The position numbers and the translations under genes are program-made. 64,000 nt of DNA, from positions 62,001 to 126,000 of the IMG/VR virus record IMGVR_UViG_3300022698_000267. One strand, given 5' to 3'. Of the stretch, positions 1-58,327 are shown one piece after another (positions within the stretch are counted from its first letter, which is position 1; every line of letters begins with the position of its first letter). The notes beneath the pieces are model-generated. The model did not search any database. It had not been told where the DNA came from and saw nothing but the letters and a program-made list of their open reading frames with translations.

Positions 1-19
1 CCACATTCCTGAGAAGGAG

Positions 20-1555
20 ATGAAGGACTTTGGAAAGAAAGTTATCTCCCTTATGAATTTGGCCGGTGTGAACACAGGTAGAGCAACTCATTACAATACC
101 AAAGAGGAGAAGGAAGAGATGGAAAAGAAAGTCCATCATGAGATCTTCTCAAAGGACCGTGGGGTCTATGCGGCTGTTCATTGTATGCCAGGGGTAACGG
201 ACTATTCCATACAACGAGCCACAATGGCAATGCTTGGAAATACATGGGAACAGCATAACAAGTCTGCCCTGACTCAGGACGTTGAAACCTTTATATTGAA
301 GAAATTGGTTGCTAATCTTCCTGCAAACAGGATGTTAAATTTGTTTTCCGATATTCGAGAAAATCGAATTAACAACTCAAGGGCGAAGAAAAGGATTATC
401 CTTGAGACCCTGTTGAATGCTAAAGGCATTGATTGGTGGGCTGTTAAATACAGAAACAAAATGCGGAAAGCCCTTGAACATGCCTTGGGAAAGAGAAGAA
501 CCGGAATTTTGAAATCAATTCTTTCTCAGGACAGGATGACTGCCGATGGATTCGCAATCGTCAAGGACTTCATTTTGCAGTATGTAGATTTAGCGGAAAG
601 ACATGTTCTGGTTTTGGACAGTCTACGGTTTATTCTGGGATGTCCAATCGGCGAATCGGAATCAAAACTTTTCAAAGCGTTTAATGACGCCAAGAAAGAT
701 CTCAAAAAAGGTAAGGGTCTTCCAATGGAGGTTTTGGAAGGAATCAGATCAACTTACCATAAAGAGGTTCCTCAGGAAGCTATTCTTGAGCTGACTAAAA
801 AGACCATGACGAATAAGCAGAAACGTCAGGTTCAGAAGAAAGCTCAGAAAGCTGGTGTAGAGGTTAAGTTTGATCCAATGAAGTCCAATACCGTCGACCT
901 TTACATTTATGCTTTTGAAATGGGAATGACTGATGCTGTTGCCAAAGCCTTAAAAGTGAAGGCGGAAAAGATTGCAGCAAGTTTTCCATATTCATTCAAA
1001 CGACTTGGAATTTTGGTGGACGATTCACATAGCATGTCTGGTCATGACACTCAAAAGTTACGACCAATGGCTATCACATTTGCTATCAGAGATGTTCTGA
1101 GAAAAACTGCTGATAAATGTGATATTGAATATGCAACCGGAACCAAACTGAATTTCCATAAGCCAAGGGGAGGAACAGACCTTGCTACTGGTTTGGTTAA
1201 CTTGGCCATGAAAGATCCAGACGCCATTTTTATAATCTCCGATGGTTATGAAAATCAGCCAAGTGGAAGGGTTAATGAAATCCTTATGGCGTTTGAGCGT
1301 GTTGGTTTTAAAAGACCAATTTACCAGATTAACCCTGTGGTTGCATCTGAGACCGGAAAGGGTTTGCGTTCATTAAGTGAATCGATGATTGTAATACCTG
1401 CTTCCAAACCAGAGTCTTTGGTTTCCAATATGTTAATTCCAATGTTGGAAACGGATCCAGTTCGAGCACTTTCCAACATTGTTAACAGTGCCATTAAGTT
1501 GATTGGACAAGGTGATAGAGCTGTGAAAAGATTCTCAGAAGAAGAAATGCTTTAG
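20..1555 (+). CDS. Ro60/TROVE-like helical domain plus C-terminal vWA domain protein
   Basis: C-terminal MIDAS motifs LVDDSHSM, GGTDL, IISDG; basic helical N-terminus with WAVKYR, resembling the conserved KY motif of Ro60/Rsr; SD AAGGAG. Confidence 0.65.
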   Translation: MKDFGKKVISLMNLAGVNTGRATHYNTKEEKEEMEKKVHHEIFSKDRGVYAAVHCMPGVTDYSIQRATMAMLGNTWEQHNKSALTQDVETFILKKLVANLPANRMLNLFSDIRENRINNSRAKKRIILETLLNAKGIDWWAVKYRNKMRKALEHALGKRRTGILKSILSQDRMTADGFAIVKDFILQYVDLAERHVLVLDSLRFILGCPIGESESKLFKAFNDAKKDLKKGKGLPMEVLEGIRSTYHKEVPQEAILELTKKTMTNKQKRQVQKKAQKAGVEVKFDPMKSNTVDLYIYAFEMGMTDAVAKALKVKAEKIAASFPYSFKRLGILVDDSHSMSGHDTQKLRPMAITFAIRDVLRKTADKCDIEYATGTKLNFHKPRGGTDLATGLVNLAMKDPDAIFIISDGYENQPSGRVNEILMAFERVGFKRPIYQINPVVASETGKGLRSLSESMIVIPASKPESLVSNMLIPMLETDPVRALSNIVNSAIKLIGQGDRAVKRFSEEEML

Positions 1556-1570
1556 AAAGGAGGAAATGTA

Positions 1571-2581
1571 ATGAACATTCGAGAAATTTTAAAAGGAACG
1601 ACACCAGGAAAAATTCAGCAAGTCGGGTACATGTCTATCATTCCTGTCCTTCGGGAACCAGAGGATGTGAATGAAAATGTATGTGATCCAACCAAGATTC
1701 TTATCGGTACCAGAAATTATGGTGAAATGGATATGGAAAATCCAACCGATAAAATTGGAATTGTTCCTTTCGGTACTGGAGTATTGACCAAACAGAGAGC
1801 ACAGAATCATGCCACCCCAAAAGCCAAGATTCTGAGATCCAAGGCTTTGGAGAGCATAGACTACGGTGCTTGCATTCAGGAAACTCAAGGTGGATTAATT
1901 TCTAGGGGAGAACATGAATTTACTATTCTTCCTTGGTCTTTGAGAGAAGCCGGAATTCTAACACGTAACAAGAAGGAGTATTCAAAACTTTGGGCGCCAA
2001 TTCGAGAATTCAATAATTCTTTGGGTGTCCGGATAACCGGACACTTGGAAGTTTATTTAGATCATTTTAAGGACGACCTGGATAGTTTTGTTGCGCAGTT
2101 TGAAGTGGTTCCAAATCAAGTCGGTGCCATTATCTTAATGAATGGCTATGTGATGGGGATCGAACTTACCCCAAATTACAGTTACTTCCGGTCCATTTGG
2201 AAACCTTTGATTCGAGAATCTTATGGTTCATTAGTGCTTCAGTACCAGAAACAATTTGGAGAGGATGCTCCTATTCCAAGAACCCGAGTTGCTTTGCAAA
2301 CCAATGTGAAAGACATGAAATCATTGCAAAAGGAATTAGTTCGGACTCAAGAAGCTGAAGATGAAAAGGTTAAAGACGTCATTCGGAAGTTCGTGAATGA
2401 TAAATTTACCTGTACATCGGAAGAGATTGCAGATGGTTACAAAGTTCAGACTGTAACTAATAAGCAATTTATTGGACAGGTGGTAACCAAGGATTCAGAT
2501 GTTCAATATGCTTCTTTGGTAACTTCTGCTAGGGGAATTCGTGAGCAACAGAAGTTCGAAAAGGATGACTTTGTAATCTAA
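1571..2581 (+). CDS. ARPP-like (DUF6569-type) protein, partner of the upstream vWA gene
   Basis: MSIIPV, AQNHA, ACIQETQG, QVGAIILMNG..GIE and W..LIRESYG pattern recalled for the ARPP family; SD AAGGAGG; directly downstream of the vWA gene. Confidence 0.55.
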   Translation: MNIREILKGTTPGKIQQVGYMSIIPVLREPEDVNENVCDPTKILIGTRNYGEMDMENPTDKIGIVPFGTGVLTKQRAQNHATPKAKILRSKALESIDYGACIQETQGGLISRGEHEFTILPWSLREAGILTRNKKEYSKLWAPIREFNNSLGVRITGHLEVYLDHFKDDLDSFVAQFEVVPNQVGAIILMNGYVMGIELTPNYSYFRSIWKPLIRESYGSLVLQYQKQFGEDAPIPRTRVALQTNVKDMKSLQKELVRTQEAEDEKVKDVIRKFVNDKFTCTSEEIADGYKVQTVTNKQFIGQVVTKDSDVQYASLVTSARGIREQQKFEKDDFVI

Positions 2582-2604: not shown

Positions 2605-2643
2605 AAAACCTCTCATTAATACAATTTTAATGAGAGGTTTTTT
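2605..2643 (+). terminator. Intrinsic terminator
   Basis: AAAACCTCTCATTAA / TTAATGAGAGGTTTT inverted repeat followed by T run. Confidence 0.8.
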
Positions 2644-3909: not shown

Positions 3910-4623
3910 ATGATCTACGTTTGTGGTGACGTTCACGAATTTAAAGACAAAGATAAACTGTCTTCCAAAAATTGGCCTGAAGGAAAACTTCTTTCCAAAG
4001 ATGATTATTTAATAGTTCTTGGAGACATGGGACTAATCTGGGATGCTATATCCTCCCCAAGAGAAAAAAGATTAATTGAATGGTATAATCAAAAATCATG
4101 GACCACTTTATTCATAGATGGTAACCATGAAAACTTTGATCGTCTATTCTCAGATGAGTTTGGCAATGTACCAAAATTTGGATCGACTGTCAAACAAATA
4201 TCCGATTCTATATACTATTTAAAAAGAGGAAATGTATACAAAATAGATAATCGAAAGGTCTTTACCTTTGGAGGTGGGGAATCCATTGATAAAAATAGAA
4301 GATTAACCAGGATTAGTTGGTGGTATCAAGAGATTCCAAATTATCGAGAAATGGATAAAGCTATTGATAAATTGAAAAATTTTGATAATTGTGTCGATTT
4401 TATCCTCACACATGCTTGCTCAAATCTTGCATTTGAGATGTTAATGCAAAGAGCCGACCTAGGATATAAAAGAGATGCTGAAAGGGCATTACGGTCCTTC
4501 TTAGACTGGATAGAAAGGAATGTGCAATTTAAACAATGGCATTTTGGCCATTATCATGATGATTTTAAATTAGATAATAAGCATTTTCTGCATTATGAAA
4601 ATAAACCAATGCGAATTGTTTAA
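3910..4623 (+). CDS. Calcineurin-like metallophosphoesterase
   Basis: GDVH, LGDMG, DGNHE, LTH, FGHYH motifs. Confidence 0.9.
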   Translation: MIYVCGDVHEFKDKDKLSSKNWPEGKLLSKDDYLIVLGDMGLIWDAISSPREKRLIEWYNQKSWTTLFIDGNHENFDRLFSDEFGNVPKFGSTVKQISDSIYYLKRGNVYKIDNRKVFTFGGGESIDKNRRLTRISWWYQEIPNYREMDKAIDKLKNFDNCVDFILTHACSNLAFEMLMQRADLGYKRDAERALRSFLDWIERNVQFKQWHFGHYHDDFKLDNKHFLHYENKPMRIV

Positions 4624-27244: not shown

Positions 27245-28108
27245 TATTCAGCGATACTGAAAATGATAGTTCATCCTTGCGACACGTATCCAACTTGTGA
27301 TACGTGTCCAACATATACAAGTACTACTGAAGCAACAGATTCAGTACGAATATATGTTGGAAATTCATTCGTTAGTGAAACTAAACGTGATGAAGAAAAG
27401 GCATTCAAGGATTATAAAGAATTACAACATTTAATGCATGTTGCAGAAAGGCATGCAGAACAAAAAGCATGGTGGTATGCTGGTTTTGGAAAAGTTCATC
27501 TTTACGACGTTAAACCAAAAAGTCATTTAATTCATAGACGAATGATGTCCTGTAATAGATTTGATTAAGAAGCAGAATTTTAAAGTGAAAAGGGAATTAG
27601 AATGCCAATCGTAATTATTCATGAAGAAGTTTTTAGTTCCAAAGACGCTAACCCAGGTTTATATGGATCAGTTGACTTTCCTGGGGAAATGTTAATCAAA
27701 ACTCATTCAGGATTATGGTTTAATACTGCAGGTACGGAATTAAATCCCAAAGAAATTTTTCTTACTAATGTCTACACAGATCCTGATGAAGAAGAGATAA
27801 ATCCAAGTGGAGAGAAGTATAAAGAAACAAGTCTAACAGATTGTAAGCATGATTTTTTCATGGCTGTTTGTAAGAAATGTAAACAAGTTGTTCCACTTTA
27901 AAATGATAGAACCCATTATACATAAACAAGGTAGGGAAACTGCTACAAAATATGTAGGGTTTGGTCAGTACGAAGAGATAAAAGCTCCTCTATGTGTGGG
28001 TGCCAAAATGTTGTATAAGGGTTTCTCTTATTATATACATAGAAACTGGAAGTATGTGACATGTAAACATTGTTTGAAGAAAAAGAGGATTAGAAAGTGA
28101 TTAAAAAT

Positions 28109-28246
28109 AGCTGGCAGCGGCGCTGGAGCGAAAGCGCACCGTATCGAGCACGGGAGTAATTGGGTGGATGTCCAGGGCTCGACCGATGGGGTACTAAACG
28201 ATCCGTCAAATTGCTCATAGCCGGGGTAGCGTCCGGTCTGCCAGTT
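28109..28246 (+). ncRNA. tRNA-like structured ncRNA with very long variable arm
   Basis: GC-rich intergenic island; CTGGCAG/CTGCCAG acceptor-like stem, GCGC D-like stem, CCGT/ACGG stem with 7-nt loop, 15-bp variable-arm helix, GCCGGG-GTAGCG-TCCGGT T-like arm; no CCA. Confidence 0.75.
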
Positions 28247-29795
28247 AAAATAACTACTAGAAGTGAAATACAGGGATAATTGAATGAGACGTTGCTATTT
28301 TTGTAAAGAACCAATCTCATTACTAGCAACTTATTATATAGTAAAGGTTCCTACGAAACCAAAAGGTGTGTCAAATAGATGGAAACAAATTGGAGTTGCT
28401 TGTGAAAGATGTCAGGATAAGACACCTATAAAGGATAAAAGGAAAGATAATGACAAATATAGTCTGTACTCGGACTGAATGTTTTTACAATATACTGTGT
28501 GTAGGTTATTTTGGATGTAAAGCAACTGCTATTGGAATTACTGAGAAAGGATGCGATACTTATTTTAATTACTCTGAAACTCTAAAAGAAATTGAAGAGG
28601 AATTTCAAGTTGCTTCAGATTCTGAAAAGGTCGATTGATGAACATTGAAAAAGCTCGTAAGATTATAGGAAAAACTGAATATTTTCGTTCATACTTTCGG
28701 AAAGATATAGTTGATGCAATTAATTGGGTACTTGACACTTATCCGAATTGTGACAATTCCATATGCAGCAAACACCTATATCATGAATCAGGATGTAAAC
28801 TTTGCGAAGCAATTACTGTGGCTGAGTTAATCATAATTGATAAGAGAGGAGAGACAATGAAAGATACTAATATAAGGGAAAAATTAAAGAAGGAATCAGC
28901 CCGTCTAGAGAGTCTGAAGAAGTCTATAGACGCTGTTCTGGCAGAACCCATAGAGGAATCAGAACCATCGGATGTTAGTATAACTCTGGTTGGAAATCCC
29001 GAATGGTTACAAAAGCTTCAAGAACTTCATGAGCTTCATGAAGAGTTGGTTGCGGAGGCTATTGTCAAATGAAATTAGAAGATTACATCGAGAAGGCTAA
29101 AAAAGAATTAGATGATCTACAAAACCAATTTGTGGAAAGCAATAAGAAAGATCCTGATATGTGGCCTTTGGAAATGGAAGAGACTGATTGGGGCGATCAG
29201 GAATTGGCCGCAAGGTTTGGACAGATTTAAATTATGAGTAGTGCAATCGATATAAATGATTTTTTAAAATCTACAGAATCTAATGTCTGTATGGGTCATT
29301 TCATGGATATGCCAGATTGTCCTGGTAAAATTGATAGTAAACTCCCTATCTGTAAAGATTGTGTTGCTCAAGCAATGGAAGCAATGGAGCAGTCAATATG
29401 GCAACAATAAGTCCAGCAATTAAAGAAATTTCTGAGTTGATTATCAAAGAGGGAAATATCAGATCCAATACTGACCAATACCAAAATACTAATTCTGCTA
29501 TTCATTCTGTATTAATGGATCTGGTTCCAATATTATGTGGAACTATGGAAAAGAATGTTAAAAGAAAAAAGAAAACTGGAAGCAATGATGAAATTGCGAA
29601 CTGTTTGTGAAAGAGAAATATGGTCTGGTTTCTTTGGAATAGATGAATATGGTACTCAGCCTGAATGTGGACAAGAGATTGAAATAGAAGTAGAAGAGGA
29701 TTGTATAATCAATGACAAATATGGAATTCGACCCTCATTTTCAGTGGAATGTCCAAAATGTCATGGAACTATAGCATGGCCTCAACAGTGGGAAG

Positions 29796-33866: not shown

Positions 33867-34580
33867 TTACTTCTCTCCTTTATTTATCACAAACCATTTG
33901 CTATTTTTACCTCTTTTATCATTTTTTCAAGGGCAAACACATCAACTCGGCCTCCCCAATCGGCAATGGTTTGTTTATCTTCTTTTGAAACATATCCACT
34001 TACAATAGATGCTCGTAATTGTAATTCCCCATTCACTTCTACAGTACCAATACCTAAAGTTCCTCTGGCTCCACTAACCCATGTAACATCTTTAAGAATT
34101 GTAGACATTACCACCTCCTTATGAAGAAATAATTAAAATTGGTTTTACATCATGAATAGGATTGTTGCAGAATTTTCCTTTTTCCTTAGTCCAACCACAT
34201 GAACATTTTTCCCAACAATCGCACTCCTCCATTTTAGCACCACACTTTACACAATGAACACTTTTATCAATTAATTTATCAAGCAATGTATCCATTTTAA
34301 TCCTTTTTAGGGTATAGAACAGATTGTTGCAAGGCCAGTGAATTCTCTAGCCATTTTTCAAGCATCAACCACTCAGTATTTTTGCCTTTTCTTTTTACAA
34401 CTTGCATTGTAGAGCGACATAGTTCATTTGCTGATTTGAGAGTTTTTTCAAGTTTATCTATTCTTTCCTGCATTAATTCAATGTACTCACATCTTGAATT
34501 AATTTTAGTTGTTTCTGAACGCATATTTTTGATAATAGTTTCTGTATTTTCTTTAGACACTTCCATTTTCAAATCATCCT

Positions 34581-35030
34581 TTAACTCAAAGTTCTACGTT
34601 TTTTAGATCTTTCACCCATGAATTCCCGTTTGTGTTTCTTTAGAAGACGAATAACATTTCCTTTAGTAGTTTCACATTTCTCAGCTATTTGTTTTATTGT
34701 CATATCCCGCATTTTTTTAGGAGGTATCTGCAAAAAGTTCTCTTGCTTTACTCCAGGATGTATAGAAAATCTTCTTCCACCCCTTGGTTTCTGTACAAAG
34801 ATGTTTATCTCTTTTAGATACCGTGTAACTCCATGTGGTGAAAGTCCCAATTTTCTTGCTAGAGGTCTTACATAAAACTCGCATTCTTTATAGAGATCAG
34901 CAATCCATTCCTCTGCCGTTTTGTAATTGGTTTTATTCCAAGTGTTGTAAGTGTCTTTAAAACTTTCCCAATCTATACGAGTATACACATTAATCCTCCG
35001 TTTTAGTAGTAACTGGTTCCCAACAATCAC
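34581..35030 (-). CDS. Putative double HTH DNA-binding protein
   Basis: VRPLARKLGLSPHGVTRYL and TIKQIAEKCETTKGNVIRLL. Confidence 0.55.
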   Translation of the reverse strand: MIVGNQLLLKRRINVYTRIDWESFKDTYNTWNKTNYKTAEEWIADLYKECEFYVRPLARKLGLSPHGVTRYLKEINIFVQKPRGGRRFSIHPGVKQENFLQIPPKKMRDMTIKQIAEKCETTKGNVIRLLKKHKREFMGERSKKRRTLS

Positions 35031-35212
35031 ATTGCTTTACAGGAGCAAATTGGTCGTCTCGTTGAACAATATATCCCATTTTTCTTTTGATTGGAGCAGG
35101 TAGTGGATAACGACAAATACCATCTCTAGTAAATTTTTCGGGGTTTAATTCGGAAATAACTGTTTTCCATTCTGACCAGATTGGTTCCCATTTACAAGTC
35201 AGACACTTAAAC

Positions 35213-36022
35213 TCAATTTGATTCTTCGATGATTGGGTCTTCTCCATTGAAAATAACTCCTACTCTATTGGTTACTTTAGAAAATACAGGCATATCTAGT
35301 CTTCTAACTTCTGTTCTTTCAATTTCTAGATCAGGATTCTCTCTTGCTTCATGTTTTGGTGGAAGTTTTTCAATTTCTTTAGTATCAAACTTCCTAAGGA
35401 CTGTTCTTTTTTGGAAGTACATTCCTCGTTTAAAATTAGCAGGATAATCATTCCAGTTCACACCTTTTTCAAATAACATTTCCTGCATATCTTTTCCATT
35501 TTTCTTGTGTAATTGTTTGTGGGAATAGTATACTCTTGCTGCCATTGAAATACTATTTTTGGTAGCATCAAATTCTCTCCACAAAATAACATTGGCTGCT
35601 TCTTGTTTAGTCGGGACTTCCCATGCTCTACAATCGAATAGAGCAACTCTGTGTGCTTTTTCAGGAATCATCTTACTTAAATAAGCATTAAAGGTTGCAG
35701 TGGTCACAGAAGTTAAAACAGAAACCATTTTCAATATTTTTCTATCAAAAAATATTTGGCTTTTCAAATTGTCACTGTAATATACCAGACTAATTTCATC
35801 TGATTGTGTATGACCAATACAGGCATTAGTTTCTTTAACAAGAGTATCAACAACAATACCCATTAATTCTGATAGTCTTACATCATAAGGACGTTCTAAT
35901 CCTTTTGTAAATTGACTGAAATTTTTACCATCAATTCGTACACAGATTGGAACCATAGGAAGAAACTTTCGTTTACTTTCACGTCCTTCATACATTTTCA
36001 TTCTGTCGCCTAAATCATCCAT
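35213..36022 (-). CDS. thg1: Thg1-like 3'-5' nucleotidyltransferase (tRNA-His guanylyltransferase family), intact active site
   Basis: DRMKMYE, RIDGKNF, QSDEISL, FDCR, WR..DA.KNSI, GVNWNDYP..FKRG. Confidence 0.93.
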   Translation of the reverse strand: MDDLGDRMKMYEGRESKRKFLPMVPICVRIDGKNFSQFTKGLERPYDVRLSELMGIVVDTLVKETNACIGHTQSDEISLVYYSDNLKSQIFFDRKILKMVSVLTSVTTATFNAYLSKMIPEKAHRVALFDCRAWEVPTKQEAANVILWREFDATKNSISMAARVYYSHKQLHKKNGKDMQEMLFEKGVNWNDYPANFKRGMYFQKRTVLRKFDTKEIEKLPPKHEARENPDLEIERTEVRRLDMPVFSKVTNRVGVIFNGEDPIIEESN

Positions 36023-36036
36023 TTATCATTTCCCTC

Positions 36037-36855
36037 TTATTTTGTATCAACAATTGGGTCTTCTCCATTGAAAATAACTCCTACTCTATTGATTACTTCG
36101 GAAAATGGAGGCATGTCTAATCTTCTGACTTCCGTTCTTTCAAATTTCAGATCAGGATCTTTTCTTGCTATGTGTTTTGGTGGAAGATCTGTAATTTCCT
36201 CTTTATTGAACTTTTTGGAAACTTTTCTTCTTTGGAAAAAAGTTCCTCGTTGAAAACTAACAGGATAATCGTTTTTCCAATCCATATCTTTTTCAAGTAA
36301 CATTGCTAATCTATCTTCTTCATTCTTTCCCAACAATTGTTTATGTGAGTAATATTGTCTTGCTGCTATTGAAATACTTTTTTCAATTGCGACAGTTTCT
36401 TCCCATAGAATAATATTGGCTGCCTCTTCCAATGTTGGGACTCCCCAAGCTTTGCAAGAAAACACAGCAACACGGTGTGCTTTTTCTGGTATTACTTCTG
36501 GAAGGTATCTATTAAATGTTGCAGTAGTTACAGAAGAGATGACAGAAATCATTTTCATTATTTTTCTATCGAAAAATATTTGACCCTTCAAATCGTCATT
36601 GTAATAAATCAGATTGATTTCATTTGATTGTATATACCCAATGCAAGCATTAGTTTCTTTGACAATGGCTTCAGTAACAATCCACATCAAATCTCGCATT
36701 CGTGTATCGAAGGGTTTATCTAATCCTTTTGTAACTCGCTTCCAATCTATACCAGTAACTTGTATACAAATTGGAATCAAGGGCATAAATCTTCGATTAC
36801 TTTCACTACCTTTGTAAAGTCTCGTTCTTTCAAATAAATCGTCTAATTTGTTCAT
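36037..36855 (-). CDS. Thg1-like paralog lacking catalytic residues
   Basis: Collinear with 35213..36022 but QVTG for RIDG, QSNE for QSDE, FSCK for FDCR. Confidence 0.88.
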   Translation of the reverse strand: MNKLDDLFERTRLYKGSESNRRFMPLIPICIQVTGIDWKRVTKGLDKPFDTRMRDLMWIVTEAIVKETNACIGYIQSNEINLIYYNDDLKGQIFFDRKIMKMISVISSVTTATFNRYLPEVIPEKAHRVAVFSCKAWGVPTLEEAANIILWEETVAIEKSISIAARQYYSHKQLLGKNEEDRLAMLLEKDMDWKNDYPVSFQRGTFFQRRKVSKKFNKEEITDLPPKHIARKDPDLKFERTEVRRLDMPPFSEVINRVGVIFNGEDPIVDTK

Positions 36856-37110
36856 TTTAATCTCCTATAAAATGTCTTTATTCCAGCCGGGTTTTGTGTT
36901 ATCAAGTCTTTTATACCAATCTTGATTGGCTAAGGTTATTGATGTACTCTTATTTTCATTCTGATCTTTCATGAAAGTCAAAGCTCGTAGAACGTAAAGA
37001 TCTTTTTCTAGATATTCTTGTGCTACGTCAAGATGACAATGCTTTTTTACTACTTCCCTCATTGTCATAGAAACTAATAGTCCGTCAATGATTTGTGAAG
37101 CATCCATTTA

Positions 37111-37596
37111 TCATTTCCTTTCTTTCCAATCAGTTATTTTAAAGGCTCTATCTTCGGTTATGTGAACAGAAAATAATTTATCAAAACCTTCATTCATACT
37201 TGGTATTTCTAATCTTTGATAGCTGGCTATTACAGCTACTTTTGGAAGATTTTTATCAAGTCGTTTTTCATTTCTTTTTATACAGATATCTAAATTTGCC
37301 TGAAAATAAAAACCAATAATCGGCATTTTTACTTTCTTCAATAAGGGAAAGTATTTTTCTCTTTCTTTTTTAGAGGGATTGGTATTATCGATAACCATTG
37401 GTTGTTCTGTTTCAATACAAAATTGAATTAATTTTGATTCTCGATTTCTGGTTTTCAACATATCCAGATTGACTCTTATATGCGTATCTGCAAAGTTCTT
37501 CTGATAGAAGGTTGATTTTCCGGTGGCTGGGATTCCAATAAAAATTATGTTATTCCTTTTCCAAGAAGCTGTTGACTTGTTTGAACTGCTTTCCAT
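37111..37596 (-). CDS. P-loop polynucleotide-kinase-like protein (AAA_33 type)
   Basis: GIPATGKST Walker A, VNLDML, VIDNTN...R, RN..R, EGFD. Confidence 0.88.
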   Translation of the reverse strand: MESSSNKSTASWKRNNIIFIGIPATGKSTFYQKNFADTHIRVNLDMLKTRNRESKLIQFCIETEQPMVIDNTNPSKKEREKYFPLLKKVKMPIIGFYFQANLDICIKRNEKRLDKNLPKVAVIASYQRLEIPSMNEGFDKLFSVHITEDRAFKITDWKERK

Positions 37597-37865
37597 TTTA
37601 TATCAAACCCTCCATCTTTAACAAAAATTGACAAGCTTTTAATCTAGTTTTAAATCCATCAGTCCCATTAAGAGGATGAGGTTTTCTCCACACAGCAGAC
37701 CATCCAGAATATTTACCTAAATTAAAAACCTGTCCAATTAACTTGCCCCCAATGTAGAAAGCATAATGACTATTTTGTAACTTCTTAAAACCATAGTCCT
37801 CAACTTTTCCATTTACATTTAAAGAATACTTCGACATTTTTTCTCCAATAAAATCTTAAACTAAT

Positions 37866-37872
37866 TTTAGTA
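37866..37872 (-). promoter_or_regulatory. Candidate late promoter TACTAAA for the kinase/Thg1 operon (motif also - at 41112, 42769, 49646)
   Basis: TTTAGTA on + strand upstream of minus-strand starts. Confidence 0.55.
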
Positions 37873-38205
37873 TATTTTCAGGAAATACTAAAAATAATCG
37901 AACTTAAATTTTAGGGATGCAACCAGGTAAAAAATTATATAGGTTTTGAAGATGCTGTTGCTGAACAATTCATAGAAGGTGCTTAAAGATGAAAGACTGG
38001 TTGTGGTTATATTTTACAGGTATTATTCTTGGAATTTATGCTTTTTTAATTATAACCCTTCGGATTTTGAAACGATATCGTGAAAAGAAATTGGAAAATT
38101 GTCCCATGTGGATAAGAACCAATATTCCCAAATGGAATACTGGCAACAAGAAGAAAGATAAATACAAGAAGTGGAATCTAAAGTGATGTAAATGGAGAAT
38201 TCAAA

Positions 38206-38376
38206 TCACTTCTTCTTTGGCTTCAATTTTGTTTTTGTTTCACCAGAATAGGTCTTCCCACCCTTTGAACAAAATTTCCTGTACTGATTTTTCTTCAAAC
38301 CGAACTTTTTGTTTGGTCCAGTAACAGTCCAAATCTTACCACCATCGGAAATGCATTTCATAAAATCAGCTGGCAT
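38206..38376 (-). CDS. 56-aa basic protein (not in ORF track)
   Basis: MPADFMKCISDGGKIWTVTG...GETKTKLKPKKK with SD AGGAGG. Confidence 0.65.
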   Translation of the reverse strand: MPADFMKCISDGGKIWTVTGPNKKFGLKKNQYRKFCSKGGKTYSGETKTKLKPKKK

Positions 38377-38725
38377 AGTAAAACCTCCTCATATAACCAA
38401 GGTTTTCTAAATAAAACAAAAACCTCTGAATAAAAGGATAGAAAAATGATAACTATAAACCCACTTTTATACTTTGTAGTGCTCTTGTTAATCGTTGTAC
38501 TAATTGCAATACATCTTAGCAAAAAATTCCATATGAAAATTCAAAAGTCGTTAGAGAACGTCCAAACCACAAACGTTAGAATCCTTGGAGTCGTGGAAGA
38601 CACCCTAGCTGGTATTGAGTATCTAAGAGAAGATATTAGAACACAATTCCATAAATGACAGATAAAAATTTAAGGACGCTGGAAGAAATTAAGTTCCTGA
38701 TGGAAAATCCAGAAGAGGATTAAAA

Positions 38726-39322
38726 ATGAAACTTAAAGCACCAAGAGCCCTAATAGAATTAACCGGCCACATTTACTTCCACAAACTTCCCGGTTTTATA
38801 CTATACAGGCCTCATATGCATAAAGTAAGAGGTGAGGACGTACGAAAAGTTTTAGATGTAGTAGAAACCGGTGACATACTACTAAGACGATTCGATGGAT
38901 ACCTCAACACAATTCTAACTCCTGGATTCTGGGGACATGCTGGAACCTACATAGGAGAAAACGATGTTGTCCATTCATTAAGCCAAGGAGTAACTCAAGA
39001 AGACATTCTAAACTTCTGTAGAGCCGATGCAATATCAATCCTTAGACCACTCAATGGTCCAATCCCAAACGTAAGAGAAATTGCTATAGCCCTTGCAGAT
39101 GAACACGTCCCATACGATTACGACTTCTGCTCAGGCAATAAAGCCTACTATTGCACAGAACTGGTCGACTACTTATCAGGATGGATATTCAAAAACGATT
39201 ACCAAATGATAGGAGGAAATTTGATACTAACTCCGGATGGGATTTTCAATAGCACACAAGCATATAAAAAACTAACGATTAACTACAGGAATCCTTCTAG
39301 AAGTCTTATTTCAACTTATTAA
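38726..39322 (+). CDS. Permuted papain-like (YiiX/YebB-type NlpC/P60) amidase
   Basis: GDILLR, WGHAG (His before Cys), PYDYDF, YYCTELV, TPDG. Confidence 0.85.
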   Translation: MKLKAPRALIELTGHIYFHKLPGFILYRPHMHKVRGEDVRKVLDVVETGDILLRRFDGYLNTILTPGFWGHAGTYIGENDVVHSLSQGVTQEDILNFCRADAISILRPLNGPIPNVREIAIALADEHVPYDYDFCSGNKAYYCTELVDYLSGWIFKNDYQMIGGNLILTPDGIFNSTQAYKKLTINYRNPSRSLISTY

Positions 39323-39906
39323 AACTGTCTTTTCAACCTCCAAGAATTTTGTATATTCGAGTATAATAGAAATTCGTCCTCAATTAAATCTTGCAAAGAA
39401 GATTTCAAAGTAGCATCAAAATCTTCAACACTAATATCCCACCCCATCTTTGCCAGAGCATAAGAAACTCCATTAAAAGTTAAGGAACCTCTCTCCTGCT
39501 CAAAAATCTTCTTCAAATCTTTTTTCAAAGCCTTGTAAGGAGGTTCCTTAAATTCTACCAACTTCCAAACCATTTGAATATTAGAATACGATAAATAACC
39601 TTCATCAACCAAGGCAAGTAGATTACGCCGAATCTCACGTTCGAAATCCTTTCTGTCATGAATCGTCCAACCACTCCTAAGCAAGATCGTCACCAAATCA
39701 GTAGTATACAAAGGTCTCAACTCAGACTTAAAAATTTCAAGCAAAACATCTTTTAAATTCGGATCTTCAACAGGATCTTCAACAGGATCTTCAGCTAATC
39801 CTAACAAATCAGACATTTCATCAAGACTTTTTCGAATGGAATTCAAAGAACGACGAAAAATTTTACTAACTTCCTTGTCCATAATCCTCTCCTCATACGA
39901 TTGCAT
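39319..39906 (-). CDS. Two-repeat winged-helix-like protein (paralog family)
   Basis: Repeated IF..E...L.....L...GW.I....F...I...L..L..EG.L.YS unit. Confidence 0.55.
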   Translation of the reverse strand: MQSYEERIMDKEVSKIFRRSLNSIRKSLDEMSDLLGLAEDPVEDPVEDPNLKDVLLEIFKSELRPLYTTDLVTILLRSGWTIHDRKDFEREIRRNLLALVDEGYLSYSNIQMVWKLVEFKEPPYKALKKDLKKIFEQERGSLTFNGVSYALAKMGWDISVEDFDATLKSSLQDLIEDEFLLYSNIQNSWRLKRQF

Positions 39907-40531
39907 AAGTCAAAACATTTCCCTTACTAGAGTAAGTCAAAAATCCTTCTCCAACCAAAATGGATAAAGTATTACTAACTTTACGTTTAAAATTGGCATT
40001 GTCAACCAACCACCCCTCTTCAGCCAAAATCTTTATCAAATCTTCGAAATGTATAATTCCCGGTCCCTCCTTAAAAATTCTAATCAAATTCTTTTTCAAC
40101 GCTCTATAAGGAGCAACATCTTCGGCCCCACGAAACTTCCAAACATCCTTGGAATTAGTAGTGATTTTATTTGAGCAATCGAAATACTCCAAAATCCCGT
40201 CCTCAACCAAGCTGGACAAAGCAGTACGAATATTCTTCTTAAATCCAGCATTACTAATCGGCCACCCCTGCTCAAACAAAATCACCAGCAAATCATTAAA
40301 CGATAAAGTACCCTGTTCCCTTTTAAAAATCGTAATCAAATTCCTCCTTACCGTACTAACAGGAACAAGAATAGACGTCATCTTCTTGCCCTCCTCCCTC
40401 TCTTCCTCCTCCATCTTCTTATGCTCCTCAACTACCATACTCCACTCAAGCCAACCAACTACTTCATCAAGACTTTTTTGCATCGAAACCAAAGAAGAAC
40501 GAATCTTTTCAACATCTTTTCCACTAATCAT
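39893..40531 (-). CDS. Two-repeat winged-helix-like protein (paralog family)
   Basis: Same repeated unit; N-terminal SL.S..KSLDE helix shared. Confidence 0.55.
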   Translation of the reverse strand: MISGKDVEKIRSSLVSMQKSLDEVVGWLEWSMVVEEHKKMEEEEREEGKKMTSILVPVSTVRRNLITIFKREQGTLSFNDLLVILFEQGWPISNAGFKKNIRTALSSLVEDGILEYFDCSNKITTNSKDVWKFRGAEDVAPYRALKKNLIRIFKEGPGIIHFEDLIKILAEEGWLVDNANFKRKVSNTLSILVGEGFLTYSSKGNVLTYAIV

Positions 40532-40809
40532 GACTTATCTCCTCTCTCCAACCACGTACGAATCCTCTGTTTAAAATTCTTCCCATGAATATCCCATCCC
40601 CTCCTAGCAAGAAGAATCATCAAATCCTCAAACGTCAAAGGCTCATCCTCCTCATGAAAAATCTCCTTCAAATCTTTATGCAACGCCTTATAAGGAAGAC
40701 ACTTACCCACCTCAAAAGAAACCCCTCTCTCCTCTGCAACCACATCAATCACAGCATCAAGACTATTTCTAACAGAAACCAAACAAGAATGCAAAACTTC
40801 CAAATCCAT
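40528..40809 (-). CDS. Single-repeat member of the same family
   Basis: PYKALHKDLKEIF..E...LTFEDL..LL...GWDI; start at MDLEVL with SD GGGAGG. Confidence 0.55.
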   Translation of the reverse strand: MDLEVLHSCLVSVRNSLDAVIDVVAEERGVSFEVGKCLPYKALHKDLKEIFHEEDEPLTFEDLMILLARRGWDIHGKNFKQRIRTWLERGDKS

Positions 40810-40822
40810 AAAAATACCTCCC

Positions 40823-41074
40823 CTACTGAACCGGTAAAGTAACAGGAGGAATATCCATACCACCTTCCAACCTGTCAGCACACTCCCTCAAAGCAGTTAC
40901 CATATCACCACGCTCAGCATTCGAAATATAGTTACTAACACCAGGCCTACCAAAATCAAAAACCAACAAAGCAAATCCCATCTCCCCAACAGTCTGATTT
41001 ATAACCTCCTCAATAGACAAACCCAAAATCTTCATAAATTCTTCTGTCTTCCTCTGCTTCTCAATATCATCCAA
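40823..41074 (-). CDS. Conserved small hypothetical protein
   Basis: GFALLVFDFG...NYISNAER.DM..ALRE pattern; SD GGAGG, TTG start. Confidence 0.6.
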   Translation of the reverse strand: MDDIEKQRKTEEFMKILGLSIEEVINQTVGEMGFALLVFDFGRPGVSNYISNAERGDMVTALRECADRLEGGMDIPPVTLPVQ

Positions 41075-41099
41075 AACAAATCCTCCAAAAATATTCAGT

Positions 41100-41770
41100 A
41101 GTAAATCATAGTTTAGTAGATTTTCGACACAAGTTACAGACCGAAATCAAGACGATCCAAAAAAATCCTGAAGAAAAGAAAGTAGAATTTCGACAAAAGA
41201 AGAAGAACGAGTCTTAACCAAAAAAACAGAAAAGAAGAAAAAGAAACCTTACCTAAAGAAAAAATTCTAAAACAAAAAGAAAGTAAAGAAAAAGAAACCT
41301 AATAAGGAAAGGTAAACAAAAAGAAAGGAAGTACCTTATTTGAAAGTAAGGAAAGGGGTAGTCTAGAAGGACTGTATTGATTAGAAGAGAAAGTCTATAA
41401 AGTTTGTTCTAGATATTTTTATAGGTAGAATAGGAGATTTACTTGTATTGTAGGCAGAAAAAACCTCTAGTTTTGTGTAGTGGATGTATTCTAGATGTTT
41501 TTCTAGGAAGTAATGAGGCATTACTTGTATTGTAGGCAGAAAAAGTCTATAGAGTTTACTCTAGATGTTTTTATAGGAAGTAATGAGGGTATTCTACTGT
41601 TTATTGACAGAAAAAACCTCTATTTTAGGAAGACTCATCGAAAAAATTAAAAGTTGCTAAAACCCCATACTGCGGCTTCAAACAATCCCTTCCTCATTTA
41701 TAAGAAGAAATCTGCTATAAAGGCTCTGGAAGTGGACATGAAAATTCTAGAGTCGTTCTAGAAGGAGTCT
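41100..41770. repeat. Non-coding block: A-rich tract then imperfect direct repeats (origin or terminus candidate)
   Basis: TTACTTGTATTGTAGGCAGAAAAA at 41439 and 41521; TCTAGATRTTTTTMTAGG at 41408, 41490, 41560; C/G skew flips here. Confidence 0.7.
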
Positions 41771-42430
41771 AAAGTCATTCTAGAATTTCTGATAGTACTT
41801 CCCAAAAAGATTTTTTAACACTATACTAACGTAAAGTCCCTCAGAGAAGGTGGCAGAGGATTTGGCAAGTTCGTATATAACGAAGGCACATATTACGAAG
41901 GGTAGAAGCAATGCTGTAAAGAATTTTTCCATAGCTTCTGCAACTAAAGGATTATTCCTCACGAAATTCTTTAATAAAAGTTTCATCGTGGGAATTTCCT
42001 TTCCACAGGTTCGAATCTTTTACAATCGAACTTCTTTACTTTACCAGTTGAGAGGTACGTTGTCCCCATATAGTCTGGACATTTCTTTGGATCTATCTGG
42101 TAATTCTTATTTTTATTCTTTCTACATCGTTCACAAAGATCATTTTCATCAAACATACTTTAATCCTCCTTTAACGATGTTTTTCTATTTCGATTCGAAA
42201 GATAAACAATCGAAGTGGAAGATTCCATTTCTTTCGTAACTCTTTTCCTTACATTTTGGGCAGTTTTGTGGAGTGAGTGTATAAAGACCCTTTTTATTAT
42301 GCTTACATTCTGGGCAGACTTCGTTTACTATTTGATTAACTTCCATTTTATACATCCTTTCTTCTAAATGAGGGATTTATTCGCAGTATGTAGGCTAATG
42401 AAGATGCTTCCCAATACCCTTATATACCTT

Positions 42431-42745
42431 TTACCCTTCATTAGCCTGTACATCAGTCTTACTAAATGTAACGCCGTCTTTTTCATTTATATGTTCTCGC
42501 AATTGTTCGATTGCAGATTTATAACCATAAATTGTATCGATAACATCATTAACTTCTTGTTCTGGATATCCTTCATCGATGAGTATTTGTCTAGTCATTT
42601 CAAGAAAGACCTTTGCCTCTTTACTGTTAAAAGCTTTAAGGAAAGCTAGTGTGGATAGAGTACCAGTGGTTTCAGTTAAGATTTGTTGTCTAACTGAAGG
42701 AGTGACTGTTTTGTTTTCAAATAGATTTTTAAGAAGATTTTTCAT
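42431..42745 (-). CDS. Hypothetical protein
   Basis: SD GGAGGT; TACTAAA upstream. Confidence 0.7.
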   Translation of the reverse strand: MKNLLKNLFENKTVTPSVRQQILTETTGTLSTLAFLKAFNSKEAKVFLEMTRQILIDEGYPEQEVNDVIDTIYGYKSAIEQLREHINEKDGVTFSKTDVQANEG

Positions 42746-42780
42746 TGCTACCTCCTCTTCTTCTTTAGTTTAGTATCTTC

Positions 42781-43025
42781 TTTCGATAATTAGTAACTTG
42801 CGTTAACTTAATGCTCAAAGCGACCGCAGGTTACTACGTAACCTGTATATAGAAGATTTCTTCTTTGTCTTTCGAAAATGCGAAAGCTGCGTTAACTATA
42901 TTTCCAAGGCTTTCGAAAATGCGAAAGCTGCGTTAACTAGGTAGAACAAAACTCGGACGAACACTTCGACCGTAAGTTACTACGTAACTTATATATAGGC
43001 GAAAATGAGATAACTGCGTTAACTT
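42781..43025. repeat. Non-coding block with iteron-like repeats and two covarying palindromes
   Basis: 30-nt perfect repeat at 42869 and 42910; TGCGTTAACT x4; CAGGTTAC-TAC-GTAACCTG and TAAGTTAC-TAC-GTAACTTA. Confidence 0.85.
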
Positions 43026-43178
43026 AGGAGAGACAATCTTCTTTATGCCAGACAACAATCTTCTTGCTTTCTCTCAGGTACCTTTCTTTTTCTTCTTCAG
43101 CTTTGTGATGCTCGATTATTGCAAGGATGATTAAAGTTGTACAGATGATGGCAGCAATTATTGTAAAAGTGATGAACA

Positions 43179-43805
43179 TTACCGAACCCTCCTGGAACTA
43201 GCAAGTGAAGATCTTATTAGGTATGAACTTGCGACTAACACATCTAGCGCTTGTAATGCTCGATACGTTTTAAATGGCAGTTTAGTGTATTGATAACTAG
43301 TCTTTATTTTTGTTCCATCTGAAATTTCTTGTTTGATTTTTAGACGATTTCCTTCCATAACCATGGTTTGTGAACCAATACCTCTTCTACCATCTTCGAG
43401 AATTAGTTCAATGGAACCAATAGGTTTATACGTTAACTGTATTGTGTTTGAATTCGTTAACAATTCCTCTTTATATAGTTTTGTTGTTGTATCAATTCCT
43501 AAATCCCCAGCTTTTCTGGCTTTGTTTAATGTTGTTAGTATTCGAATCATGTAGTCAGATTTTTTACTTTCTTTCTCATCGAATATTTTTTGTACAGCAG
43601 CACTGAACCCACTTACAAAACAATCGTTAAAAGCATTATTTGTTCTTAATCTATACTTTGTGATGTTTTGTTCTGTATTGAGTTTTGAAATCAATTGTTT
43701 TATTTTGGGTTCTTGCTCTGTTCCATTCCAATTTGCAAGTAAGAATTCCCACCATATTTCTGCACTTTGAATTTTGGTAGGCATTACAAAATCTACTTCA
43801 GCCAT
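43179..43805 (-). CDS. Hypothetical protein
   Basis: SD AAGGAG; 208 aa. Confidence 0.7.
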   Translation of the reverse strand: MAEVDFVMPTKIQSAEIWWEFLLANWNGTEQEPKIKQLISKLNTEQNITKYRLRTNNAFNDCFVSGFSAAVQKIFDEKESKKSDYMIRILTTLNKARKAGDLGIDTTTKLYKEELLTNSNTIQLTYKPIGSIELILEDGRRGIGSQTMVMEGNRLKIKQEISDGTKIKTSYQYTKLPFKTYRALQALDVLVASSYLIRSSLASSRRVR

Positions 43806-43865
43806 GATTTTCTCCTTTCATTTCTTATGTTTTAATATTTTTTAAGAATAATGTCAAAAACTCTC

Positions 43866-43894
43866 TTGACTTTCCATTACAAAACCTATATAAT
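43866..43894 (+). promoter_or_regulatory. Early sigma70-type promoter
   Basis: TTGACT-17-TATAAT. Confidence 0.8.
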
Positions 43895-44243
43895 ATTCGT
43901 AAGTTAAATATAATTTAAATAGTAGCAAGAGGAGGTGAAAATGATACATGATTAATGCTAATCTGGCAGCTCTAATTTCTAGTGGACTTACAACTCTACT
44001 TTCTAAAAACATAGATAATGGGGAAGTCATAGATTCTCAGACCCAAGGATGTACACAGGGATGGAATAAACCCAAGTCAAAATCTAAGGGACGACCTGGA
44101 ACATGGGCCTACGTCGAGAAAGAAGCTCTTGCAGATTTGGATAGAAGCAATGCTCTCAGTGATGAAGAGATGGAAGAAATCTATGCTGCAGCTCGTGCTA
44201 GGGGATATGAACTCTAATTGAATGTGAAGGAGGTAACTAGTGT

Positions 44244-47825: not shown

Positions 47826-48179
47826 ATGAAATGTCTACAGTGTGGTCGATGTTGTTTCTATGCTGTAATCATTATTAAGCCAGAATCTATATCAGAAGAT
47901 CTTGATATGGACTGTTTAACTGATGATGACTTAATGGCTTTGGATGGTACAGAGAAATGTCCTCATTTAACTTGGGAAGGACGTAAAGCTTTTTGTAACA
48001 TTCATCATTACGATTGGTTTCCAGATACACCTTGTGGACAGTTTACACAGATCGAAGCATCACCTCATAGTTTTTGTCGTATTGGGAAGAATATGTTAGA
48101 TCCAAAGAATGAAGATTTATGGCGAAGGATTACTTTTAGAACCTGGGAAGATGAAATAGAGGAGACAAATGAAAAATAA
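47826..48179 (+). CDS. YkgJ-like CxxCxxCC cysteine-cluster protein
   Basis: CLQCGRCC, CPHL, CNIH, PC. Confidence 0.7.
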   Translation: MKCLQCGRCCFYAVIIIKPESISEDLDMDCLTDDDLMALDGTEKCPHLTWEGRKAFCNIHHYDWFPDTPCGQFTQIEASPHSFCRIGKNMLDPKNEDLWRRITFRTWEDEIEETNEK

Positions 48180-49080
48180 ATATCAGTCTTTAACTAAAGA
48201 AGAAAGATTTAAGGGATCTTTGGTTGGTTTGGCAACAGGAGACGCATTGGGTGCTTCTCTAGAGTTTATACATACGATACCAAATCCTCCTTTAACTGAA
48301 ATGACAGATGGTTATTGGACTGATGATACATCTATGGCTCTTTGCACTGTTCATAGTCTTATCGACAGAAGGACTTTTGATTTAAGAAATCAAATGGAAA
48401 ATTTTGTCAGTTGGTACACCAGAGGCTTTCTTAGCAGCAGAGGTTACTGTTTTGATATTGGCAACAGAACAAGAGAAGCTTTAGAAGATTACATGTTGCT
48501 TGATCAAATAACTGAAGGAGTAGATCCCCATGATGACAATTTGAGCAATGGTTCATTGATGCGATTGGCTCCAGTACCTTTATTTTATTACAATAATGTA
48601 GAATTAGCAGCAAAGAGAAGTAAACAGCATACATTACTAACTCATCCTAGTCAAATGTGTGTTGATGCGTCTGCATGTCTTTCAACTTTCATAACTTGTT
48701 GTTTTCATGATCATCTAGGGAAACATGCTTTGGTAGAAGATGTTGCTAACTATCGTAACGACCTTTTTCCAAGTTTAAGTAACTGGTTTGATGATTACTT
48801 ACTTAATCCAAGGAAACCAGATACCAGCAAACATGTTGGTTACGTAATGACATCTTTAGAGATGGCCTTGTGGGCTTTTTTAACTACACCTAACTTTGAG
48901 GAAGGATGTATATTATGTGTTAACAATGGTGGTGATACTGATACCTATGCAGCTATATATGGACAGTTAGCTGGTGCCTACTATGGTTACAAAAGTATAC
49001 CAGAGAGGTGGACAAAGAAACTTATTCAACACAAGATTATTTGTGATTATGCTAAGATTCTTTGTGATATAACTGCTTAA
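48169..49080 (+). CDS. ADP-ribosylglycohydrolase (DraG/ARH family)
   Basis: GDALGA, WTDDT, FDIG, NGSLMRLAP, TH, GGDTDT.AAI.GQLAGA.YG. Confidence 0.95.
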   Translation: MKNKYQSLTKEERFKGSLVGLATGDALGASLEFIHTIPNPPLTEMTDGYWTDDTSMALCTVHSLIDRRTFDLRNQMENFVSWYTRGFLSSRGYCFDIGNRTREALEDYMLLDQITEGVDPHDDNLSNGSLMRLAPVPLFYYNNVELAAKRSKQHTLLTHPSQMCVDASACLSTFITCCFHDHLGKHALVEDVANYRNDLFPSLSNWFDDYLLNPRKPDTSKHVGYVMTSLEMALWAFLTTPNFEEGCILCVNNGGDTDTYAAIYGQLAGAYYGYKSIPERWTKKLIQHKIICDYAKILCDITA

Positions 49081-57957: not shown

Positions 57958-58247
57958 TTTTTGGAGGATAATGTTATGGAAGCTTTAGAGATAGCTGATA
58001 AATGTGTTCGAATTGCAAAATCTTGTTGTCACAATGAACAAGTTGATGTTGCTAAGAATTTTTTTAATCGGGCTATCACAAAATTAGAGGCTAGTGATGT
58101 TCCGGGAAAGATGGAAGCTATAGACATCATAATCACAGCGTGGAATAAACTTTTGAATGATAGGGAACAGGGTGTCTTAGGTACTGGTTTCGAACATATT
58201 GATTCACAAACTATTTTAAATTAAGAACATTTTTCTTCAAATAGTAC

Positions 58248-58276
58248 TTGACTTTTTAGTTCGTAGCCTATATAAT
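58248..58276 (+). promoter_or_regulatory. Early sigma70-type promoter
   Basis: TTGACT-17-TATAAT, spacer identical to the 57601 copy. Confidence 0.88.
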
Positions 58277-58327
58277 ACAAATAAGAGGTTGAGGAATTAA
58301 GAACTTAAATTAAGAAAGGAGATAAAA

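Follow-up and report, generated by a model that had tools for sequence, protein, structure and literature searches.

The stretch of DNA analysed here, 64,000 nucleotides long and referred to as the window, comprises bases 62001-126000 of a 273,563-bp IMG/VR virus record (IMGVR_UViG_3300022698_000267) that CheckV scores as 97% complete and that is therefore a jumbo phage. At the 5′ edge of the window lie two coupled genes, ORF1 and ORF2, whose products are probably the protein components of a ribonucleoprotein of the Ro60/Y-RNA type, unrecognised by sequence models. The predicted fold of ORF1 is a Ro60-like ring followed by a vWA domain, and ORF2 belongs to the ARPP family. The two genes recur as neighbours in phages and bacteria, and a short distance upstream the phage carries an array of six small RNA genes that resemble bacterial Y RNAs.

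Results

Structure and conservation of the two proteins

An initial annotation of the window had described two plus-strand open reading frames (ORFs), the first with a basic helical N-terminus and a vWA domain whose metal ion-dependent adhesion site (MIDAS) is intact, the second ARPP-like, followed by a terminator common to both. All of these features were recovered. The ORFs are present at 20..1555 and 1571..2581, separated by 15 nt, and a 15-bp hairpin with a T-run begins 24 nt past the end of ORF2. ORF1 is truncated by the window edge: its database copy (P0001, 534 aa) begins 50 nt 5′ of window base 1, at L005 11951, preceded by an AGGAGG ribosome-binding site, and the ATG at window position 20 is Met24 of the full product. 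The N-terminal domain is helical and basic (61 K+R versus 43 D+E, net +18, with 18 conserved basic columns) and includes the motif WAVKYR at residues 163-168; W163, K166, Y167 and K170 are invariant across 52 homologues, in which the MIDAS residues D357-x-S359-x-S361, T409 and D431 are likewise invariant or nearly so.

The predicted fold of ORF1 is a HEAT-repeat toroid and then a vWA domain, and its structural match to Ro60 spans the whole RNA-binding ring plus the vWA. In the AlphaFold Database (AFDB) the nearest two clusters are unnamed members of the ORF1 family, with TROVE and DUF7788 clusters next, and in a viral library, which has no member of the ORF1 clade, a ‘Ro-like RNA binding protein’ of a Gordonia phage is the best match that bears a name. 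The Ro60/TROVE-vWA identity first proposed for ORF1 thus stands as far as the predicted ring and vWA fold are concerned, but not as regards a TROVE sequence signal. Pfam gives a marginal VWA_2 match only, hhalign against single TROVE sequences yields about 3% probability, and the whole phage genome is without a match to the TROVE model, though control genomes give matches; PHROGs, PADLOC and NCBIfam returned nothing useful for ORF1 or ORF2. It is predicted structure and genomic context, and not sequence, that place ORF1 in the Ro60 superfamily.

ORF2 matches ARPP-1 at 69.1 bits and ARPP-2 at 38.3 bits (PF20208 / PF22549; cut-off 27), its model (pLDDT 93.1) reaches a TM score of 0.77-0.84 to AFDB ARPP clusters, one of them HIRAN-fused, and C101, Q16, Q78, H80, Q106, E178, Q183, E198 and R215 are invariant across 43 sequences. 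The only description of the ARPP domain gives it a conserved Cys and Gln and proposes that it acts on ribose moieties (PMC9503650), which the invariant Cys and Gln residues of ORF2 fit. The ARPP model has no structural match in the PDB. The phage genome holds a single copy of the gene.

The gene pair and its predicted complex

The ORF1 family comprises at least 552 clusters at 50% identity. We examined 64 non-redundant loci, 58 of them from one-genome-per-species contigs that span Planctomycetota, Myxococcota, Bacteroidota, Desulfobacterota, Gemmatimonadota, Gammaproteobacteria and the Candidate Phyla Radiation, the rest from other phage-like and bacterial contigs. Wherever at least 1.2 kb of downstream sequence was present (60 loci), ARPP stands directly 3′ of the ORF1 homologue on the same strand in all cases except two, and these two are very distant vWA-only relatives. 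Because ARPP adjacency recurs in 58/60 loci, the pairing is not due to chance. The two genes form a fixed operon, in phages as well as in six or more bacterial phyla, and this neighbourhood survey bears out the coupling of the two genes that had been read from the phage alone.

The two proteins are also predicted to bind each other, with an ipSAE of 0.69 versus 0.00 for the best control; among solved complexes 58 of 80 attain the ipSAE mark, among mismatched pairs 2 of 110. Contact agreement between runs is at least 92% and partner pLDDT at least 86. The predicted contacts join ORF1 residues 359-361, 406-410 and 433-453 with ARPP residues 14-19, 175-181 and 239-263, so that the interface includes MIDAS residues together with the invariant ARPP Q16 and E178. 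An acidic ligand residue that completes the MIDAS is the classical binding mode of vWA domains. According to these models, ARPP would dock on the MIDAS face of ORF1.

Y-RNA-like genes upstream of the pair

The six Y-RNA-like genes of the phage lie 1.0-2.0 kb upstream of the window, on the strand of ORF1, which places them within the distance of about 4 kb at which Y RNA genes accompany Ro60. A promoter-like sequence close to consensus, TTGACA-17-AATAAT, precedes the array at L005 9874-9902. The Rfam family YrlA (RF02553) matches the array full-length at 37.3 and 34.3 bits, scores under the Rfam gathering threshold of 69 bits, and R1, a covariance model of the permuted core, scores the units at 69-85 bits. 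Five units are made of a closing stem around a T-arm, a capped acceptor-like hairpin and a D-arm, and in two of the five an anticodon arm is retained as well. As for the sixth, ARAGORN reports it as tRNA-Leu(CAA); it has a class-I shape with two acceptor mismatches and is held within a 13-bp closing stem (z -4.1), and a genuine phage tRNA-Leu(CAA) of 88 nt is located elsewhere. The conserved box of the phage RNAs is GUUAUUACAG, the general form being GRACU..GUY..CAG. As the pattern GBKRTTACAG it is found in all units but one, and its 5 matches in L005, every one inside the array, compare with 0.20 expected (0/200 shuffles reach 5); the 64-kb window contains 1 match versus 0.82 expected. These neighbouring genes strongly suggest the ribonucleoprotein that the initial annotation had envisaged, although not with the RNA that it had put forward as partner, which is dealt with below.

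The same kind of RNA is found at other loci. R1 gave 163 hits, of which the best 150 were analysed; 77 of these turned out to be junctions between tandem tRNAs and were rejected, as such junctions are in the YrlA study (PMC4201824), and weaker hits at 129-141 kb of the phage, inside ordinary tRNA arrays, were discarded as well. From the best 150, 38 free permuted modules were kept. Most of them (28/38) end no more than 1.5 kb 5′ of the gene, and they are present also at loci devoid of any ordinary tRNA (L027 and L057); many bacteria have a free module or a box RNA at a distance of 50-700 nt 5′ of the gene. An alignment of 20 sequences from phages and four phyla has as its consensus the closing stem, the T-arm and the acceptor hairpin, with compensatory changes at 16 of 18 pairs overall and at all six closing-stem pairs. 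Paired cells amount to 93.2%, versus 65.7% in shuffles (0/500 reach the observed value) and 44-52% when partners are slid, and the covariation score is 0.752 versus 0.15-0.18. Folds and covariation together recover the YrlA architecture of closing stem, T-arm, capped acceptor-like hairpin and D-arm.

The flanking box, searched as GRACU-N3-9-GUY-N-CAG, is concentrated in the same place: 60 copies in 74.8 kb of upstream zones (0.80/kb), versus 12 in 646 kb elsewhere on the same strand (0.019/kb) and 7 in 721 kb on the opposite strand (0.010/kb). Copies of the box are arrayed, up to five together. Where sequence 5′ of the gene was present (54 loci), a box RNA and/or a same-strand tRNA stands within 1.5 kb at 39. 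The block upstream of the gene in Pirellulales consists of a tRNA-Cys, a box-preceded, stem-enclosed tRNA-like RNA and a short box RNA of two hairpins and a T-run that is reminiscent of YrlB. The anticodon of the tRNA-like RNA differs from one close relative to the next (ctt, ttt, atg, tag, att, acg, cgt and ctg) and the remainder is about 90% conserved. In L013 (5560-5900) and in the alignment of L001, L013, L014, L016, L020, L028 and L039, the variable anticodons include A34 (atg, att) and the adjoining tRNA-Cys is constant.

Such anticodons could also be those of baits in an immune module, acting by abortive infection or exclusion, in which tRNA-like RNAs detect an invader enzyme that cleaves or modifies tRNAs and the altered bait is recognised by the ring, which sets free or activates a toxic ARPP; the phage copy would then serve superinfection exclusion or as a decoy against host anticodon nucleases. 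A tRNA-like body conserved while its anticodon changes, in some cases to an A34 form unusual for decoding tRNAs, speaks for this explanation, some loci are island-like, with transposases, Band_7, EndoV and a HIT-helicase, and ARPP has been described in conflict systems (PMC9503650). Yet PADLOC finds no match, the ARPP fold offers no sign of toxicity, and the embedding of the module in apparently functional same-strand tRNA arrays, described next, fits maintenance better than suicide. We therefore rate an immune module as unlikely.

tRNA arrays around the module

Across the 64 loci, ARAGORN finds 478 tRNAs in 721 kb, and 478/478 are on the gene strand. At least 10 tRNAs are present at 20 loci; Minicystis rosea has the most, 47 within 13.5 kb. 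If an array unit is taken as at least 20 tRNA genes at 2 or more per kb, several bacteria carry such a unit at the module and the phage locus does not; the ordinary tRNA arrays of the phage are 68-80 kb away. These arrays, at G000:C1 ~129.6-132.5 kb and 139.7-141.5 kb (L069 and L070), hold at least 12 tRNAs, 3′ of the window and apart from the Y-like array. The related phage contigs L076 (3729-3797) and L077 (17562-17637) have a tRNA with anticodon CTA, ‘tRNA-Pyl’ according to ARAGORN, possibly an amber suppressor for stop-codon recoding in those phages.

The strand bias bears on a further explanation, namely that ORF1 and ARPP constitute a protein-directed vWA chaperone system with no RNA role, which is found near tRNAs because mobile elements insert at tRNA genes. 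vWA domains do usually bind peptides, the vWA is treated as a chaperone in ADP-ribosylglycohydrolase (ARG) systems (PMC9503650), and some loci show no detectable upstream RNA. Nevertheless, the structural match to Ro60 extends beyond the vWA over the entire RNA-binding ring. In addition, the upstream RNAs are not genuine tRNAs but a covarying family on the same strand, with a box almost confined to that place, and tRNAs found without exception on the gene strand are not expected from integration-site preference. On these grounds a chaperone without RNA seems to us very improbable.

Minicystis provides a direct comparison with the known proteins, since a canonical Ro60 (TROVE 148 bits, vWA_Ro60 217 bits) is encoded in the same array, some 4 kb 5′, so that both Ro types are found together there. 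The NCBI label of this canonical Ro60, ‘Prophage Clp protease-like protein’, looks like a misannotation.

Relation to known systems

Bacterial Ro60 (Rsr) with YrlA/YrlB, as in Deinococcus, Salmonella and Mycobacterium (including RYPER with PNPase and the rsr-yrlBA-rtcBA operon), resembles the module in its ring and vWA with MIDAS, and in same-strand small RNAs within a few kb that have a closing stem and the order T-arm, capped acceptor and D-arm (PMC4201824); at some loci described here a short second RNA resembles YrlB. The module differs by the missing TROVE sequence signal, by a different box in place of GNCGAA, and by an obligatory partner that is ARPP instead of RtcB/RtcA or PNPase. Moreover, a single locus may carry as many as six RNA genes, some of which have an unpermuted tRNA-like body and a hypervariable anticodon, and tRNA arrays surround many of the loci. 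Among phages, canonical TROVE proteins with tRNA-like partners occur in some jumbo phages (PMC7824862), and the Ro60 of Thermus phage phiLo with its Yrl1/Yrl2 RNAs (PDB 9KOP, 9L5Y; PMC12135203) has a recognisable TROVE, CGAA-motif RNAs and no ARPP partner.

The phiLo protein binds Yrl RNAs encoded upstream of it and recruits host PNPase (PMC12135203), and the fold and RNA arrangement reported here are analogous. It might then be supposed that the module has an ordinary Ro60 function, in which PNPase or another exonuclease tethered by Y RNA degrades misfolded RNA and ARPP is accessory or regulatory. Against this stand the near-invariant adjacency of ARPP (58/60) and its conserved, catalytic-looking residue set, the replacement of the canonical Ro-binding motif of Y RNAs by a different box, and the canonical Ro60 that Minicystis retains beside the module, which suggests non-overlapping functions. 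An ordinary function is accordingly a rather improbable explanation.

ARG-centred ADP-ribose systems (PMC9503650) share the same ARPP family, with its conserved Cys and Gln. The main text of that paper lists ARPP with ARG, HIRAN, WYL or deacetylase and names no Ro60-like partner, whereas no ARG is adjacent in six neighbourhoods of the present module. Published tRNA arrays (L-arrays), in those portions of the literature available to us, are similar in being dense, same-strand, horizontally mobile tRNA clusters with RNA-processing and translation genes nearby; the same portions contain no mention of Ro60, TROVE, vWA or a Ro60-like/ARPP/Y-like RNA module, and the phage copy lies outside the phage's own tRNA arrays. 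The literature that we searched yielded no description of the three-part module of Ro60-like protein, ARPP and Y-like RNAs.

Other features of the phage and of related loci

The coordinates of the main features are collected in Table 1, where G000:C1 denotes the whole phage record and L005 9955-10960 is equivalent to G000:C1:59955-60960.

Table 1. Position of the module components in the phage and of the canonical Ro60 of Minicystis. Plain numbers are window positions.
Feature	Position	Strand	Remarks
Six Y-RNA-like genes	G000:C1:59955-60960 (L005 9955-10960)	+	Outside the window, 1,040-2,045 nt 5′ of window base 1
Ro60-like protein gene (in-window part)	1..1555	+	Full product P0001, 534 aa; predicted ring ~residues 20-345, predicted vWA ~346-520
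WAVKYR motif, residues 163-168	437..454	+	Inside an invariant basic helix: W163, K166, Y167, K170, H177
MIDAS residues of the vWA	1019..1255	+	D357-x-S359-x-S361 (1019-1033), T409 (1175-1177), D431-GYEN (1241-1255); predicted ARPP docking face
ARPP gene, 336 aa	1571..2581	+	C101 (1871-1873) with Q78/H80/Q106, putative active site; E178 (2102-2104) and Q16 in the predicted MIDAS-face interface
Intrinsic terminator common to both genes	2605..2641	+	15-bp stem then T-run; symmetrical on both strands
Canonical Ro60 of Minicystis	L072 1378-3075 (CP016211, about 8.2568-8.2579 Mb)		TROVE + vWA_Ro60; 11 flanking tRNA genes

Two elements that the initial annotation had tied to the gene pair did not keep that place. 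The RNA at 28109, proposed as a tRNA-like partner, has no match with ARAGORN, Rfam (E≤1) or R1 and was rejected as such. The region at 28108-28247 is intergenic and GC-rich, in a phage whose DNA is AT-rich; it has a closed multi-hairpin fold (-58.5 kcal/mol, z -3.0) and is a candidate structured RNA. As for the ARG at 48169, the gene is genuine (48169-49080; PF03747, E 8e-60), but it lies 45 kb from ARPP, and no ARG or rhodanese-phosphatase is adjacent to the module in six Pfam-annotated neighbourhoods, so the linkage was abandoned.

Closer to the pair, a 13-bp terminator-like hairpin with a weak T-tail, probably not functional, is found within the ARPP coding sequence (2020-2049), and a calcineurin-like phosphoesterase (Metallophos, E 1e-8) is encoded at 3910-4623, 1.3 kb 3′ of ARPP; such phosphatases occur alongside ARPP/ARG systems (PMC9503650). 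About 1 kb 5′ of the RNA array is a gene for an MreB/actin-like protein (L005 8010-9032, G000 58010-59032; PF06723, E 4e-20). GC skew is negative for about 10 kb at ~34000-44000 of the window, which suggests a minus-strand gene block in an otherwise plus-strand region. The phage encodes an RtcB RNA ligase (251 bits; G000:C1:220472-221554) that is unlinked, 158 kb from the module, and no Rnl2 was found in its genome.

A nucleotide search of the phage collection gave no match, and LR756500 is the only GenBank phage found to carry the ORF1 family; in this huge phage the module stands among PNK3P, NADAR, CYTH and Macro genes. In L078 it is alone beside an IS110 transposase. On the Stieleria chromosome (L001 5056-7414 and 11148-17227) it forms an island with Band_7, Endonuclease V, a HIT-DEAD helicase fusion, an EF-Tu copy, RlaP, two 23S rRNA-IVP proteins and 14 tRNAs, possibly a translation/RNA-maintenance island.

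Discussion

What might a Ro60-like ring, ARPP and tRNA-like RNAs do together? We favour, as the probable arrangement, a particle of the Ro60/Y-RNA type in which ARPP is an effector docked at the MIDAS and the tRNA-like RNAs are adaptors or baits, acting on tRNAs or on tRNA-directed factors. The basic ring would bind the Y-like RNAs by their stem and box, in the way Ro60 binds the Y RNA stem. ARPP would sit on the MIDAS face, probably via the invariant Glu178, as an enzymatic effector in the place that PNPase or RtcB holds in canonical Ro60 systems, and the tRNA-like body would steer the particle to tRNAs or tRNA-recognising factors, or bait them. Because ARPP elsewhere accompanies ADP-ribose-processing enzymes and the 3′-end-binding HIRAN, its chemistry is likely to be directed at damaged or modified ends of RNA, on a moiety of the ribose or ADP-ribose type. 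We infer a role in repair or surveillance: in the phage, the tRNA pool may be protected or restored against host tRNA-targeting defences, and in bacteria the particle may be a maintenance module of mobile tRNA arrays.

Several observations weigh against this reading. Concerning ORF1, neither Pfam TROVE (PF05731) nor vWA_Ro60 (PF25045) matches it at E≤1, a profile of its family has 0 matches among PDB sequences even at E≤10, and hhalign against a shallow 20-sequence TROVE alignment, which is not diverse (relatives all at least 67% identical), aligns the vWA part alone, at 39% probability and E 3e-4. Concerning the RNAs, the YrlA scores of the phage array are below threshold, the canonical motif GNCGAAN0-1G near the 5′ end is present in 1 of 28 units, which have the GRACU..GUY..CAG box instead, three small ORFs separate the array from ORF1 in the phage, and 15 of 54 loci with upstream sequence have neither box nor tRNA. 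The docking of ARPP on the MIDAS face is a prediction, and ARPP is without a characterised relative, so its chemistry is a guess. In addition, the loci are mutually related, so that enrichment statistics and p-values overstate their independence. Finally, no RNA run is listed among the sequencing runs matching the phage, the sole match being a wetland metagenome DNA run with 8% of words.

If the particle exists as we propose, the Ro60/Y RNA system would reach hundreds of bacterial and phage lineages in which sequence searches recognise no more than a ‘VWA domain protein’; the published YrlA survey was confined to the surroundings of annotated TROVE genes. For the orphan ARPP domain there would be a definite partner that can be tested and, in RNA, a class of substrate, and for the long tRNA arrays, of whose biology little is understood, a candidate protein-RNA machine. 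Tentatively, and with much less assurance than the particle itself, one may go further and see in the large, unrecognised Ro60 branch of at least 552 clusters, with ARPP and its own tRNA-mimicking Y RNAs, a particle dedicated to the protection or repair of the tRNA pool in mobile tRNA arrays and jumbo phages, in ARPP a new RNA-end (ribose/ADP-ribose) enzyme, and in the hypervariable anticodons the record of an arms race with anticodon nucleases. Among the carriers of the module are the cultured bacteria Stieleria, Rhodopirellula, Roseiconus and Minicystis, in which this biology may be approached.

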